Shown in pieces: positions 29,831 through 52,583 of a stretch of DNA of 64,000 nucleotides. The position numbers and the translations under genes were made by a program. The first letter of the stretch is position 1, and every line of letters begins with the position of its first letter. Origin of the DNA: Octopus sinensis (Eukaryota). The stretch is taken from assembly GCF_006345805.1 (NCBI RefSeq), contig NC_043007.1:41850001-41914000 (forward strand), given 5' to 3'. The notes under the pieces were generated by a model that was not told the DNA's origin, did no database searches, and saw nothing but the letters and a program-made list of their open reading frames with translations.

Positions 29831-30000
29831 ATGATGGGATGTGGACTAAGTTTCAAATCAGAAAAACCCAAGAAGAAACAGAAAGAAGTCACCTCCAATA
29901 CATGTGCTATATTGTCTGATAGACAAAATCTGTTAGTTAGAGAATCATGGTCTATCATTCAGGACGAAATACTTACCATTGGTGTATATATTTATTACAG
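29831..30000 (+). CDS. Globin coding exon 1 (acylation motif, basic extension, A and B helices)
   Basis: MMGCGLSFKSEKPKKKQKEVTSNTCAILSDRQNLLVRESWSIIQDEILTIGVYIYY plus AG|GTAAAA phase-2 donor (B12.2). Acceptor TTTTCTTTATCAG at 29773. Not present in the ORF track. Confidence 0.93.
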
Positions 30001-30199
30001 GTAAAACACATTTCTTGTTTGTGAGTTACATTTTTATGTATCTTATATGGTTTTAATGTATTTCATCTGTTTTTGTGTTGACATCATTCATTGTTTTTCT
30101 TTAATGTGTATCATCATCTGTTAAGTGTTGTAATTGAACATATATGTTTACATGCATGTGCATATGTGTGTGTGTGTGTGTGTGTGTGTGTGTGTCATT

Positions 30200-30815
30200 T
30201 ATATTTTACTTGTTTCAACCATTGGGCTGTGGCCATACTGGGGTACTGCCTTGAAGGGTTTTATTCAAATGAATCGACTCCAGTACTTGTATTTTTTTAA
30301 GTTTGCTATTTATTTTTATCAGTCTCTTTTGCCTAACCACTAAGTGACAGGGACATAAACAAACCAATGCCAGTTGATAAGCAGTGGTTGGGGACAAACA
30401 TAAAGATGCACTCACATAGATACATGCACATTAAAAAAAATGCTTAAAGCTCCTTCCAAAGTCATGTTGACTCAGGGCCAATTTCTGGGTTTCAATAGTG
30501 TACATATTCTCCCCTGGACGGGAAGCCATTCCATCTCAGGAATGCTCATTTTTACCAGCTGCATGGACTGAAGCAACATGAAATGAGGTGTTTTGCTCAA
30601 GAACATACCGCGTCGCCCAGTCCAGGAATCAAAACCCCAATCTTACAATCATGAGTCCAACACCCAAGCCACTAAGCCGCATACCTACGCACATAAAGCT
30701 TTGGTCAGTCTGGGGCTATAGTAGAAGACATTTGCCTAACATGTCACGTATTGGGACTGAAAGAAGAAAACCATGTGGTTGAGAAGAAAGCTTCTTCCTG
30801 CACAGCCAGACCTTT
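30200..30815 (-). mobile_element. Cluster of three SINE fragments
   Basis: 30200-30410 matches the body of the 55590 family, 30465-30690 the 54813 family, and 30695-30815 the 57080 head. Confidence 0.7.
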
Positions 30816-30997
30816 ACTTATGTTTGCATCTGTATAAGACCATATGCATAAACACACATGTGTCTATTTGAATGTGTATATGTGTGTGTGTGTGTGTGTG
30901 TGTGTGTGTGCGTGTGTGTGTGTGTGCGCGTGTGTGTGTGTGTGCGCATGTGTGTGTGTGTGCGTGTGTGTGTGTGTGTGTGTGTGTGTGAAAGAGA

Positions 30998-31220
30998 GAT
31001 AAAAATCAAACATCCAGTCAACATCATGGTGTTTGGAGTGATCACTAGCGATGGTGACCTTATGCCACCATGCATCTTCCCACATAGCCTCAGACTCAAC
31101 ACAGAGGTCTACATCATGTACATGAAGGAAGTAGTGCTGCCCTGGGTCAAAAGGGTGGCTGCAGGAAGATCCTATGTCAGGTAACAGGACTCTGCACCAT
31201 GCCATACAAGCAAGAGAACT
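30998..31220 (+). mobile_element. Tc1/mariner-superfamily transposase fragment
   Basis: KIKHPVNIMVFGVITSDGDLMPPCIFPHSLRLNTEVY...VVLPWVKRVAAGRSYVR*QDSAPCHTSKRT: the MVWG-like motif and the second catalytic Asp (QQDSAP.H), with an in-frame stop. Confidence 0.85.
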
Positions 31221-32620
31221 AATTCAGTTCTCAACCAAATTGAATGCATTTTTCTAGTAATGACAGTCCAGTCTTCAGCTACATTTTGAGAAAAAATAAT
31301 TGAAATCTGGTTTATATAAATATTCGTCCCCAGTCGAAAGACACCTGTTGTTATGTCCTGTTATTATTATTATTATTATATTATTATTATTATTATTATT
31401 GTATTTTGTATTTATATTCGTGTAACATCATCTGTTTTTCCGTCCTTGTTTTTGTATACATTCGATACTTTCTTCCAAGGAATCTAATGCCCTTAGCTTA
31501 GTTTTTCCTTGGAGCTGGCCAGATTGGAGCAATCTCAAGATTAATCAGCTGAAATTGCGAGGATAATCCAGTTCTTGACTGAGGATAGAAAACTTCGAAT
31601 GACTCGTCATCCCCTTTTGTATTACCTAGTTGTCCAGATGTTTTGTGTTCTTGTACTATTTTGTACTTTTTATATATATATATATATATAAGAGAGTTTG
31701 TATGTGTGTGTGTGTGCATGCATGTATGTTCCTTATGCATTCCAAAACCGAGTTGCCGTTTTTGAGTTTTTGACGTATGAAGTATCAAATGATTCAGTAA
31801 CCTTTTGGCTACCAACTAAACTATATTTTCATTCACTTATTCACATTACAAAAGTTTAAGATTATCATATTTCTTTTAGTCACCTAGTCTAAATGACATC
31901 TTTTATCACCACCACCAAAACGACAATGATGTCACATTTTCTATGTGTTCGGGTATTCATTACATACATTAGGCCAATGACTGACAAGTATGTGTGTGAT
32001 CGTGTTTCTGTCTGTCAGTATACATACATTTTTGTGACAACTGACAAACACACACACACCACACACACACACACACACACGCACACATACACACACACAC
32101 ACACATACACACACACACACACGCACATGCACATACATACACATATCCAAAGACAGAGATAGACACGCACAAGGACAGAAAAAGACTTCACATATGCATT
32201 AATGTAAATGTGTGTGTGTGTGTCACTTACTTCATGTATGTAACTTCCCCCACCCAACAGTGAAACATGCTGATATTGAAAGTTTTCTTGTGGCCTGGAC
32301 TTTCACTTTCTTCACTGTGACATTCATTCAGTCATGAATTTTATAACATTTAGTAAATGTTCCACATAAATGTTGACTTTCTGTACTTTCTTACATTGGT
32401 GACACATACTAACTTTTGCTAAATTGGTGACTTTCCATTTTTTTTGATAGTATAACTATGCTACAGAAAGTATGTTTTGCACCTATATTGACTACACTTC
32501 ATTTCGCTTGAACTTTGTGTGTGTATGTTTTACTATTTTCAGTATTATCAATTCTATGAGTGTGTGTGTGCGTTTCTACATTCATTACATCTATAGTAAT
32601 CTATAGTAGAGATCATTTCA

Positions 32621-33160
32621 CGCTGTTTTAATGAGCCCACATCTAATGAAGTAGCCATCCTTATGGTTGGTGATCCCATTGAAAATCATGACATTTTCAT
32701 TCATGTTCAAGATAACAAACTTAAACGTGTTTCACAGACTCATCCCTCTTATCATGCTCTCCAGTATAATCTTATTCTCTTGAATGGACAAGATGAGTAT
32801 CATTTCAATATTCCTCGGATTGAACCTGCAACAGGATAGCCAATTACAAACAAAAGGGTGTCGTCAAATGACTTCTATTCTTACCAACTGATGTTAAGAC
32901 CAGAACAATCAAATCCTTTCTACTATAAGCACAAGGCCTGAAATTTCAGGGGATGGGACCAGTCAATTATATCGACCCTAGTGTCTCACTGGTACTTAAT
33001 TTATCGACCCCAAAAGGATGGAAGGCAAAGTTGACCCTGGCAGCATTTGGACAGGCAAAATACAGCTGAAGCATTTTGCCCGACATGCTAATGATTCTGC
33101 CAGCTTGCCACCTTCCAGAACAATCAAATCAATTACCCATGTCAAATAAACTTTATTTTT
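32621..33160 (+). mobile_element. Helitron Rep-helicase coding fragment (pseudogenised), interrupted by a SINE
   Basis: RCFNEPTSNEVAILMVGD...LKRVSQTHPSYHALQYNLILLNGQDEYHFNI...G*...VSSNDFYSYQLMLR matches the Helitron region FN.PT..EVA...HRSYDALQYPL....G..G...FY.Y.LM.R. Confidence 0.88.
32916..33114 (-). mobile_element. Meta/RUDI-like SINE with 16-bp TSD
   Basis: CCAGAACAATCAAATC is duplicated at 32900-32915 and 33115-33130. Confidence 0.88.
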
Positions 33161-50703: not shown

Positions 50704-50873
50704 AATGATGATATATATATATATATATATATATATATTATATATATATATATATATATATATATACTATATATATATATATATATACATATATATATAT
50801 ACATATATATATATACATATAATAATATATATATATATATATAAGTATGTATGTATTATAATGTGTATATATA

Positions 50874-51172
50874 CGCAATGGCCTAGTGGTTAGGGCAGCG
50901 GACTCGCAGTCGCAGGATCGCGGTTTCGATTCCCAGACCAGGCGTTGTGTGTGTTTATTGAGCGAAAACACCTAAAAGCTCCTTGAGGCTCCGGCAGGAG
51001 GTGGTGATCCCTGCTGTACTCTTTCACCACTCTTTCTCCCACTCTTTTTTCTGTTGGCCTGCTCGCTTAGCCAGCAGGGTGGCATCATTCGAAGGCTAAA
51101 ACAATGCGAATGCATTGTGACCAGCGGTGTGTAATAACATCTAATGGTCTGGTCGGTCACGTGATCACGTGA
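50874..51172 (+). mobile_element. tRNA-derived SINE (second family)
   Basis: A box TGGCCTAGTGGTTAGG and B box GGTTTCGATTCCC. Homologous to 37435-37705. Confidence 0.88.
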
Positions 51173-51199
51173 TATATATAATTGCCATGTTGATTCGTT

Positions 51200-51392
51200 A
51201 GTTACTGCACGCATTTTTTTTCTCTCCTTCTTTCTGTGTTTTTTTTCTCTCTGTGTATCTTTCTGTTGAAGAGCGTAGGCTCAAAACGTTAAAGACTTGT
51301 TTTATTTATATTTCCTGAGCGCCATACTAATACAATTGTTTGTTTGTTTTCCACCTGCCTTCGTCTTTTGTCTATTTTCATAAAGCTTCCCG
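51200..51392 (+). mobile_element. Short hammerhead-bearing repeat with inactivated core
   Basis: 51258-51295: TCTTT-CTGTTGA-A-GAGC-GTAG-GCTC-AAAA-CG-TT-AAAGA (A6 to U, G12 to A). Ends in (TA)n. Confidence 0.7.
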
Positions 51393-52304
51393 TTATATAT
51401 ATATATATATATATATATATATGTATATATGTGTATATATATATATATATTATATATGTATGTATGTATATATACATATATATGTGTGTCTGTTGTGTGT
51501 GTGGAGTGAGAGAGAGGCAGAGAAAGCTAAGTGTTCTGTTATTGGTAGGATAAAAAAATAAAGTACTCCATTCAGTAAGAGATAAATATCATTTAATACA
51601 CACAGTATTTAAATACAAGCTACTATTAGTTTCATGCAGTGGAAACACAATAAATCAGCAGATTTATATATCATGCCTTGTGCTTGCAAGCATGTCTTAG
51701 ACATACTAACTATATTCAGAAAAAAAAGGAGGATCACTGTTGGAATGTCTTCAAGCATAGGTCAACTTTGGTCAGCACAGTGTTGGGCTTGGTTGAAGAC
51801 TGATTAAGTAGACTGATAAACTTTAGGTATTTATTTCATCTGATTTAACAGGAGGTCTTCTCAAGTCAAGTTCAATATTGTTCTTCCCCTACTCCCTACC
51901 CTTCCTCTTTCTCTCTCTCTCTCTCTCTCTCTCACTCTCTCTCTCACTCTCTCACTCTCACTCTCTCTCTCTCTCCCTCTCTCTCTCTCTCTCTCTCCCT
52001 CTCTCTCTCTCTCTCTCTCTCTCTCACTCTCTCTCTCCCTCTCTCTCTCTCTCTCTCTCTCTCTCTCTCTGTCCTTCTCTCTCCTTCTCTCTCTTTCTGG
52101 AATCTCTTTCTTGAATTTCTCCATTCTCAATCTTAATTTTTTTTTTCGCTTTATGTCTCACATCTATCTTTTTTTAGTTTTCTGTCCCTCACTCTCCTCT
52201 TCTTTCGCTCATCCCCACTTTGTCTCTCAGTCCCTATTATAACTTCAACAACACAATAAATTAATAACATCTATTTGTCTATCCTTCTTTTGTTTTCATT
52301 CTAG

Positions 52305-52583
52305 CGTTTGTGGCCCATCATTGATGACAGCTTCCGACAGGTTCTTTGTGATGTGTACACAACAGAGGTGCGAGAGGCCTGGCAGACATTTATTGAGTTT
52401 ATATTTGATAGTATGAAAGAAGGAATCGATGCAATGTCACTGGCTCAAACTCTATCCACAGAGTGCCAAAGCATCGATGACCAAAATAATGATAAACCAA
52501 CTCTGAATCATCTTGAAGAGAATTCTGATGCAGAATTAACAATTTCTGATGAAACTGTTGACACTAAACTACTGAACAAATAA
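52305..52583 (+). CDS. Globin coding exon 3 (G7 to H helix and acidic C-terminal extension)
   Basis: Acceptor TTTTGTTTTCATTCTAG| phase 0. RLWPIIDDSFRQVLCDVYTTEVREAWQTFIEFIFDSMKEG (H8 Trp, MKEG) aligns without gaps to neuroglobin-type G/H helices. Stop TAA at 52581-52583. Confidence 0.93.
   Translation, partial: RLWPIIDDSFRQVLCDVYTTEVREAWQTFIEFIFDSMKEGIDAMSLAQTLSTECQSIDDQNNDKPTLNHLEENSDAELTISDETVDTKLLNK

Follow-up and report, generated by a model that had tools for sequence, protein, structure and literature searches.

Predicted dual acylation from the second of two tandem start codons in a spiralian-clade globin of Octopus sinensis

What kind of globin is kept by an animal that transports its oxygen with hemocyanin? 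The question is raised by gene LOC115217050 of Octopus sinensis, which lies in a stretch of 64,000 nucleotides (the window; NC_043007.1, positions 41,850,001 to 41,914,000 of the forward strand, in assembly GCF_006345805.1). The explanation favored here agrees with an earlier note on this DNA: the product is probably a non-transport globin, attached to a membrane by means of a Met-Gly-Cys dual-acylation signal. More exactly, the gene is quite likely to encode an intracellular, non-respiratory globin of the spiralian clade Sp-gb, predicted to be dually acylated when translation begins at the second of two adjacent ATG codons, and probably membrane-attached.

The gene has three exons on the + strand between window positions 29831 and 52583, and all of its junctions are GT-AG. 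Its parts are as follows:

29831-30000 (+): coding part of exon 1, 170 nt; encodes MMGCGLSFKSEKPKKKQK..., helix A and helix B to B12; ends in phase 2 within Ser57 (AG/T)
30001-40436 (+): intron 1, 10,436 nt, GT-AG, globin position B12.2; holds microsatellites and an alternative first exon
40437-40671 (+): exon 2, 235 nt; B12 via the CD corner, the E helix and the F helix to G6
40672-52304 (+): intron 2, 11,633 nt, GT-AG, phase 0, globin position G7.0
52305-52583 (+): exon 3, 279 nt; G7 to helix H, then a 50-residue acidic tail and the stop codon TAA (52581-52583)
after 30000 (+): exon 1 donor, ACAG/gtaaaa
at 40437 (+): exon 2 acceptor, ctttcag/TTTT
after 40671 (+): exon 2 donor, TCGG/gtaaga
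at 52305 (+): exon 3 acceptor, ttctag/CGTT

The coding parts sum to 684 nt (170 + 235 + 279), that is, 227 codons and TAA, and the introns lie in phases 2 and 0. The exon coordinates proposed in the earlier note (29831-30000, 40437-40671 and 52305-52583) are exact: the borders are GT-AG, the frame is open, and the 227-amino-acid product is 100% identical to the RefSeq protein XP_036363294.1, "neuroglobin-like isoform X1 [Octopus sinensis]". The annotated coding span on CM016869.1, 22,753 nt, corresponds exactly to window positions 29831-52583, and that annotation calls no further gene within 10 kb on either side of the coding sequence. Exon 1 was missed by the open reading frame (ORF) track, as that note said; its ORF (29831-30004) is stopped at 30002-30004 after only 57 amino acids and would fall below a 60-amino-acid cut-off. 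The O. bimaculoides genome holds the same three exons with GT-AG borders. Its protein (XP_014784435.1, "neuroglobin isoform X1"; Obi_961126590 in Song et al., 2020, PMC7771090) is the ortholog and shares the intron positions and the MMGCGLSFKSEKPKKKQK start; only 15 of 227 aligned residues differ, whereas its tail is two residues longer and its introns measure 15.4 and 17.6 kb, against 10.4 and 11.6 kb in O. sinensis.

Transcript evidence comes from another cephalopod, in the form of a 1813-nt Logan contig (L001; run SRR6517992) that contains the whole, uninterrupted coding sequence of an ortholog 71% identical to the octopus protein. Compared with the window by blastn, L001 aligns in three blocks, one for each exon; the first begins exactly at 29834, exon 1 aligning to mRNA positions 756-922, and exon 2 aligns too. 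The gene caller had placed the L001 start at an internal Met; the frame is open upstream of it to caccATGG, giving MGCGFSFKSQEMEKRQK, with a stop further upstream. When further cephalopod orthologs were sought by a database search with the full L001 protein, only the same four proteins were returned.

RefSeq also lists two shorter isoforms. X3 (146 amino acids) begins at internal Met81, and X2 uses a separate first exon within intron 1:

39875-39900 (+): alternative first coding exon (MRIILEDLR) of RefSeq isoform X2, 179 amino acids, without helices A and B

Both were rejected as alternatives to the three-exon product, since they lack helices A and B or more and thus cannot form a complete globin. 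X2 is probably minor or spurious, because the O. bimaculoides blastn alignment begins only at 39902 and leaves the X2 first exon outside, not shared. A candidate 3' splice acceptor, a 22-nt pyrimidine tract ending in CAG (29750-29772, +), lies 58 nt ahead of the ATG, and an unannotated non-coding exon may precede the exon that carries the ATG. The 5' untranslated region of the L001 ortholog is 755 nt long; in a blastn comparison with the window only the three coding blocks aligned, a result that is uninformative on such an upstream exon.

That the product is a globin, as the earlier note had claimed, is borne out by its Pfam match, its matches in the Protein Data Bank (PDB), its predicted 3-on-3 fold and its heme-pocket residues (Phe at CD1, His at E7 and F8). 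Pfam assigns it to Globin (PF00042; E = 2.6e-12, 47.7 bits against a cut-off of 22), and the best PDB sequence matches are fish cytoglobin (6e-11), lamprey hemoglobin and neuroglobins. With 21 relatives as input, AlphaFold gave a model whose mean predicted local distance difference test (pLDDT) score is 83.3; the core, about residues 28-190, exceeds 90, whereas pLDDT falls below 70 after about residue 190 and confidence is low for residues 1-23 and after about residue 196. A Foldseek search with this predicted structure placed neuroglobin and cytoglobin at the top (template-modeling, TM, scores relative to target length of 0.81-0.92), together with a tardigrade globin and the Spisula nerve globin; over these matches the TM scores are about 0.8-0.9. 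Helix positions were assigned by alignment with sperm-whale myoglobin and human beta-globin, with the established helix numbering:

B10: Tyr55 (29993-29995); myoglobin Leu29; beta-globin Leu28
B12: Ser57 (split codon); myoglobin Arg31; beta-globin Arg30
CD1: Phe69; myoglobin Phe43; beta-globin Phe42
E7: His92; myoglobin His64; beta-globin His63
E11: Leu96; myoglobin Val68; beta-globin Val67
F8: His124; myoglobin His93; beta-globin His92
G6/G7: Arg135/Arg136 (exon 2/3 boundary); myoglobin Glu105/Phe106; beta-globin Arg104/Leu105

Among the 21 aligned relatives, Phe69 and His92 are invariant and His124 is present in at least 90%. Because Ser57 aligns at B12 and the exon 2/3 boundary at G6/G7, the introns are the ancestral B12.2 and G7.0, as had been proposed from their phases. 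No intron interrupts helix E or helix H in this alignment, all of B12 to G6 lying in exon 2 and everything from G7 onward in exon 3, and the absence of E10.2 and H10.0 introns that the earlier note had reported is thereby confirmed. The pocket combines Tyr at B10 with His at E7, a pairing that usually alters ligand stabilization in invertebrate globins. The tardigrade and Spisula entries retrieved by Foldseek are described as hexacoordinate, as are neuroglobin and cytoglobin (PMC3176823), and from the distal His and these nearest structural matches it may be guessed that the octopus globin is hexacoordinate as well.

To which globin lineage does the protein belong? Bilaterian globins have been resolved into five clades and a well-supported clade restricted to spiralians, Sp-gb (Song et al., 2020, PMC7771090). 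The octopus protein was compared by phmmer with labeled sequences from Additional file 3 of that study, with these scores:

Sp-gb, spiralian-only: 90.9 bits (Pdu-Sp-gb) and 67 bits (Capitella Sp-gb fragment)
Clade III, globin X: 62, 52, 48, 42 and 31 bits
Clade IV, new in Song et al., 2020: 43, 30 and 24.5 bits
Clade II, globin X-like: 41, 36 and 33 bits
Clade I, blood globins and cytoglobin: 35 bits
Clade V, neuroglobin (Pdu_Ngb): 29 bits

A neighbor-joining tree (40 sequences, 167 columns, 200 bootstraps) recovered the published clades and placed the window protein inside Sp-gb (84.5% bootstrap), apart from clades III and V, as sister to L001 (100%) and then to oyster and scallop proteins (64%); the phylogeny against globin X, neuroglobin and molluscan globins that the earlier note had proposed as a check was thus run. 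The nearest named relatives come from oyster, scallop, Argonauta, a nemertean and gastropods, and the host is itself a spiralian, as membership in Sp-gb demands. Song et al. (2020) had labeled the O. bimaculoides ortholog "Sp gb" (Additional file 6, PMC7771090). Platynereis Pdu-Sp-gb, Lottia Lgi_159879, Capitella Cte_192439 and Pinctada Pfu_7847 are the best-scoring labeled relatives; Pdu-Sp-gb and the Lottia protein share the MGC start, and the G-helix motif M-x-x-[RK]-L-W-P is common to the group. Identity to these proteins is only 30-35%, however, and the octopus protein differs in its 50-residue tail and in having Tyr rather than Phe at B10. Tyr at this position is also found in the oyster and scallop proteins, and Phe in most other Sp-gb members.

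The RefSeq product name suggests instead a neuroglobin, and neuroglobin structures are the best Foldseek matches as well as the nearest solved structures; the acylation motif and the N- and C-terminal extensions, for their part, recall globin X. Either identity is nevertheless highly improbable. The affinity to neuroglobin in the phmmer comparison is the weakest of the scoring clades, bar one clade IV member, and neither the 29 bits of Platynereis neuroglobin nor the 62 bits at most of clade III approach the score of Pdu-Sp-gb. Gene structure also disagrees with both: neuroglobin, which is not known to be acylated, carries an E11.0 intron, whereas exon 2 of the octopus gene spans the whole E helix; and globin X reportedly has four introns, at B12.2, E10.2, G7.0 and H10.0, as Roesner et al. 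are said to have described in 2005, the second and fourth of which are missing from the octopus gene. By the phmmer scores and the tree, the protein belongs to the spiralian Sp-gb clade and is neither globin X nor neuroglobin; "neuroglobin-like" is a loose similarity label, and a misleading one. Clade III is represented in O. bimaculoides by other globins, among them XP_014768482 (PMC7771090).

Is the acylation signal one that the cell could use? The answer depends on the start codon. At 29831 the DNA reads ATG ATG GGA TGT GGA CTA AGT, or MMGCGLS, and the features that bear on initiation are these:

29831 (+): first ATG, context tcaATGa, with T at -3 and A at +4
29834-29836 (+): second ATG, the probable functional start, context aatgATGg, with A at -3 and G at +4
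29789-29791 (+): in-frame TGA, upstream of both ATGs

Because of the TGA, no longer N-terminal extension is possible. N-myristoylation requires a Gly that is exposed once the initiator Met has been removed, and methionine aminopeptidase leaves Met-Met uncleaved, so a Met-Met-Gly-Cys form is not myristoylatable; Gly stands at position 2 of the nascent chain only with initiation at 29834. In this respect the earlier note needs correction: the 227-amino-acid product that it had begin MGCGLS begins MMGCGLS when read from 29831, and the MGCGLS start holds for the 226-amino-acid product read from 29834. Both Kozak context and orthology favor the latter. With a weak context at the first ATG and a stronger one at the second, Kozak's rules predict that leaky scanning will carry ribosomes on to the latter; the single start ATG of the L001 ortholog (caccATGg) aligns to 29834; M1 of the relatives that start with MGC aligns to octopus M2; and an older O. 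bimaculoides model (A0A0L8G4T2) begins at the second Met (MGCGLS). Most of the protein would accordingly be expected to begin MGCGLS and could be lipidated.

Read from the second ATG, the N-terminus is G-C-G-L-S-F-K, and that of L001 is G-C-G-F-S-F-K. N-myristoyltransferase favors Gly2 and Ser6 with no charge on the residue at position 3, where a Cys suits later palmitoylation; the octopus protein has small or uncharged residues at positions 3-5, Ser at 6 and Cys at 3. The same Gly2, Cys3, Ser6 pattern is found in the SH4-type N-termini of Src-family kinases and of G-alpha(i/o), where it directs myristoylation and then palmitoylation; those proteins are unrelated, and the likeness extends to the lipidation signal only. 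Within cephalopods, conservation of the motif could be followed in three Octopus species and the source species of L001. Octopus and L001 agree at 8 of the 9 positions of MGCG[L/F]SFKS and at only 5 of the next 14. More widely, an exhaustive HMMER search had 89 relatives of single-domain size among its best 148 hits; of these, 58 begin MG and 37 begin MGC, and three more carry MGC behind a short upstream extension; the oyster relative begins MGCGNS and the scallop relative MGCGSS. The acylation call made here combines the motif rules with a published GPS-Lipid/GPS-Palm prediction: for the O. bimaculoides ortholog (MMGCGLSFKS), Additional file 6 of Song et al. (2020, PMC7771090) puts myristoylation at position 3 and palmitoylation at position 4 and enters "yes" under "dual N-ter acylation predicted". 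That table numbers the site "position 3" and adds no remark.

A second octopod Sp-gb paralog begins MGNQQ, with Gly2 and without Cys3 (P0017 of Argonauta hians; O. bimaculoides XP_014784070). Only myristoylation is predicted for it, and the firmness of membrane binding may accordingly not be the same in the two paralogs.

If ribosomes used the first ATG (29831), the product would be a soluble cytosolic globin that keeps Met-Met-Gly-Cys and is never myristoylated, and its resemblance to the MGC proteins would be a relic. The scanning rule prefers the first AUG, and ATGATG is identical in O. sinensis and O. bimaculoides, the RefSeq models of both species beginning MM. The shared ATGATG carries little weight, however, because even the introns of the two genomes are about 90% identical. 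The soluble product is also at odds with the unequal contexts of the two ATGs, with the single ATG of the more distant cephalopod, with the MGC start of relatives, and with the far better conservation of the nine residues from the second ATG than of the fourteen that follow; we regard it as unlikely.

The two codons might also share initiation, giving a lipid-anchored form from the second ATG and a soluble form from the first, and thus one gene for two compartments. Sharing of initiation by closely spaced AUGs is known, the two in-frame ATGs lie 3 nt apart in unequal contexts, and an MMGC start is seen in at least one further mollusc globin listed by Song et al. (the Pinctada model Pfu_11519). 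Against this, the extra ATG is absent from the L001 ortholog and is therefore not a conserved feature of the family, and the upstream in-frame Met codons of other models (P0016, P0035 and P0041) look like annotation choices. Use of both starts thus seems quite unlikely, and it is very unlikely that ATGATG would act as a built-in switch, in which leaky scanning yields both forms and the choice of start codon sets the ratio of membrane to cytosolic protein.

Initiation at the second ATG, with a lipidated product, is the reading preferred here, and it can be drawn out as a sequence of steps. Ribosomes would scan past the weak first ATG and initiate at the second (29834); the initiator Met would be removed and N-myristoyltransferase would acylate Gly2 (G-C-G-L-S, with Ser at position 6); Cys3 would be palmitoylated once Gly2 had been myristoylated; and the acylated globin would, by analogy with zebrafish globin X, be held on the cytoplasmic face of a membrane. 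A globin tethered there may serve in redox sensing or in the handling of O2, nitric oxide or reactive oxygen species, and not in oxygen transport. Vertebrate globin X resembles the octopus protein in the Met-Gly-Cys signal (here a motif only, read from the second ATG), the N- and C-terminal extensions, the distal and proximal His, and the B12.2 and G7.0 introns; it differs in belonging to clade III, and its membrane binding and hexacoordination have been measured, whereas for the octopus protein they are inferred. Green fluorescent protein fusions of zebrafish globin X localize to the membrane, and Gly2-to-Ala and Cys3-to-Ser mutants lose this localization (Blank et al., 2011, PMC3176823); the protein is hexacoordinate and unlikely to be respiratory (PMC3176823). 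That experiment agrees with what the earlier note had said of N-terminal acylation in globin X, and the same motifs are widespread in arthropod and other invertebrate globins (PMC7457136).

Two features outside the globin core are not conserved. The lysine-rich KPKKKQK (residues 12-18) is present as the earlier note had it, and so is the acidic tail of about 50 residues: the last 50 hold 11 Asp or Glu and 3 Lys or Arg, for a net charge of -8, and AlphaFold predicts the tail, by its low pLDDT, to be disordered. Neither net charge is kept in L001, where the N-terminal 23 residues sum to +1 (+4 in O. sinensis) and the tail to -1 (-8 in O. sinensis). Between O. sinensis and O. bimaculoides, the ratio of nonsynonymous to synonymous substitution (dN/dS) is 0.136 for the globin core, which is under purifying selection, and 0.815 for the tail. 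As the charges diverge and the dN/dS of the tail is high, the lysine-rich stretch and the acidic tail are taken to be lineage-specific and near neutral, and we would not build a mechanism on either. The gene as a whole was rejected as a pseudogene, its ORF being intact, its core constrained and its heme-pocket residues conserved.

Several points weigh against a membrane-attached Sp-gb globin. Acylation predictors tend to over-call. The annotated ORF begins MM, and with the first ATG in use the Gly is not N-terminal and myristoylation is impossible. The lysine-rich stretch, a possible reinforcer of membrane binding, is not conserved (+4 against +1), and the acidic tail likewise is not. The tree is a small sample analyzed by a simple distance method, and transcript support for the gene is cross-species only, from L001.

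The surroundings of the gene consist largely of mobile-element remains and simple repeats, and no second host gene was seen in the 64-kb window. The globin gene is flanked by two diverged copies of one family of retrotransposon without long terminal repeats (26314-27794, +, and 59393-60994, +), which cover the C-terminal half of a reverse transcriptase (RVT_1, 8e-11), share 58% amino-acid identity and are both broken by stop codons. Penelope-like debris comprises reverse transcriptase fragments at 5854-7077 (-), a GIY-YIG fragment at 19277-19714 (+) and a further piece at 1390-1791 (-); the RVT_1 and GIY-YIG matches are weak, and related Cys-rich ORFs are present. CA, TA and CT microsatellites are numerous, and an assembly gap of 100 N occupies 15767-15866. 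The longest "ORFs" of the window (438 and 534 amino acids, rich in His, Thr and Tyr; 21602-23289) are translated CA-rich low-complexity DNA and not genes, and the ORFs of at least 110 amino acids elsewhere in the window were set aside as low-complexity CA/TA repeats or remains of retrotransposons. Scanned in full against Rfam, the window gave no match. In the representative search with the octopus globin, the top scores overall were those of echinoderm multi-domain globins (P0009 and P0010): a sea urchin protein of 1842 amino acids, in which 12 globin units matched, and proteins of 880-1240 amino acids from Patiria miniata. Each of these units is 23-27% identical to the octopus globin.

N-terminally acylated globins have been a known class in animals since 2011-2012. 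The present gene and its structure are already public, as is the predicted dual acylation of its ortholog (RefSeq; Song et al., 2020); the description is correct, and neither it nor the kind of object is new. Three things are added to it. For the acylation model the annotated protein has one Met too many at its start, a point relevant to the design of expression constructs; the lysine-rich stretch and acidic tail, being lineage-specific and nearly neutral, are not to be read as functional; and the name "neuroglobin-like" misleads for a member of Sp-gb, a clade for which no experimental study of any member was found in the literature searched. Membrane-tethered globins bear on the question of what globins did before they carried oxygen, and an animal that transports its oxygen with hemocyanin offers a clean setting in which to ask it.

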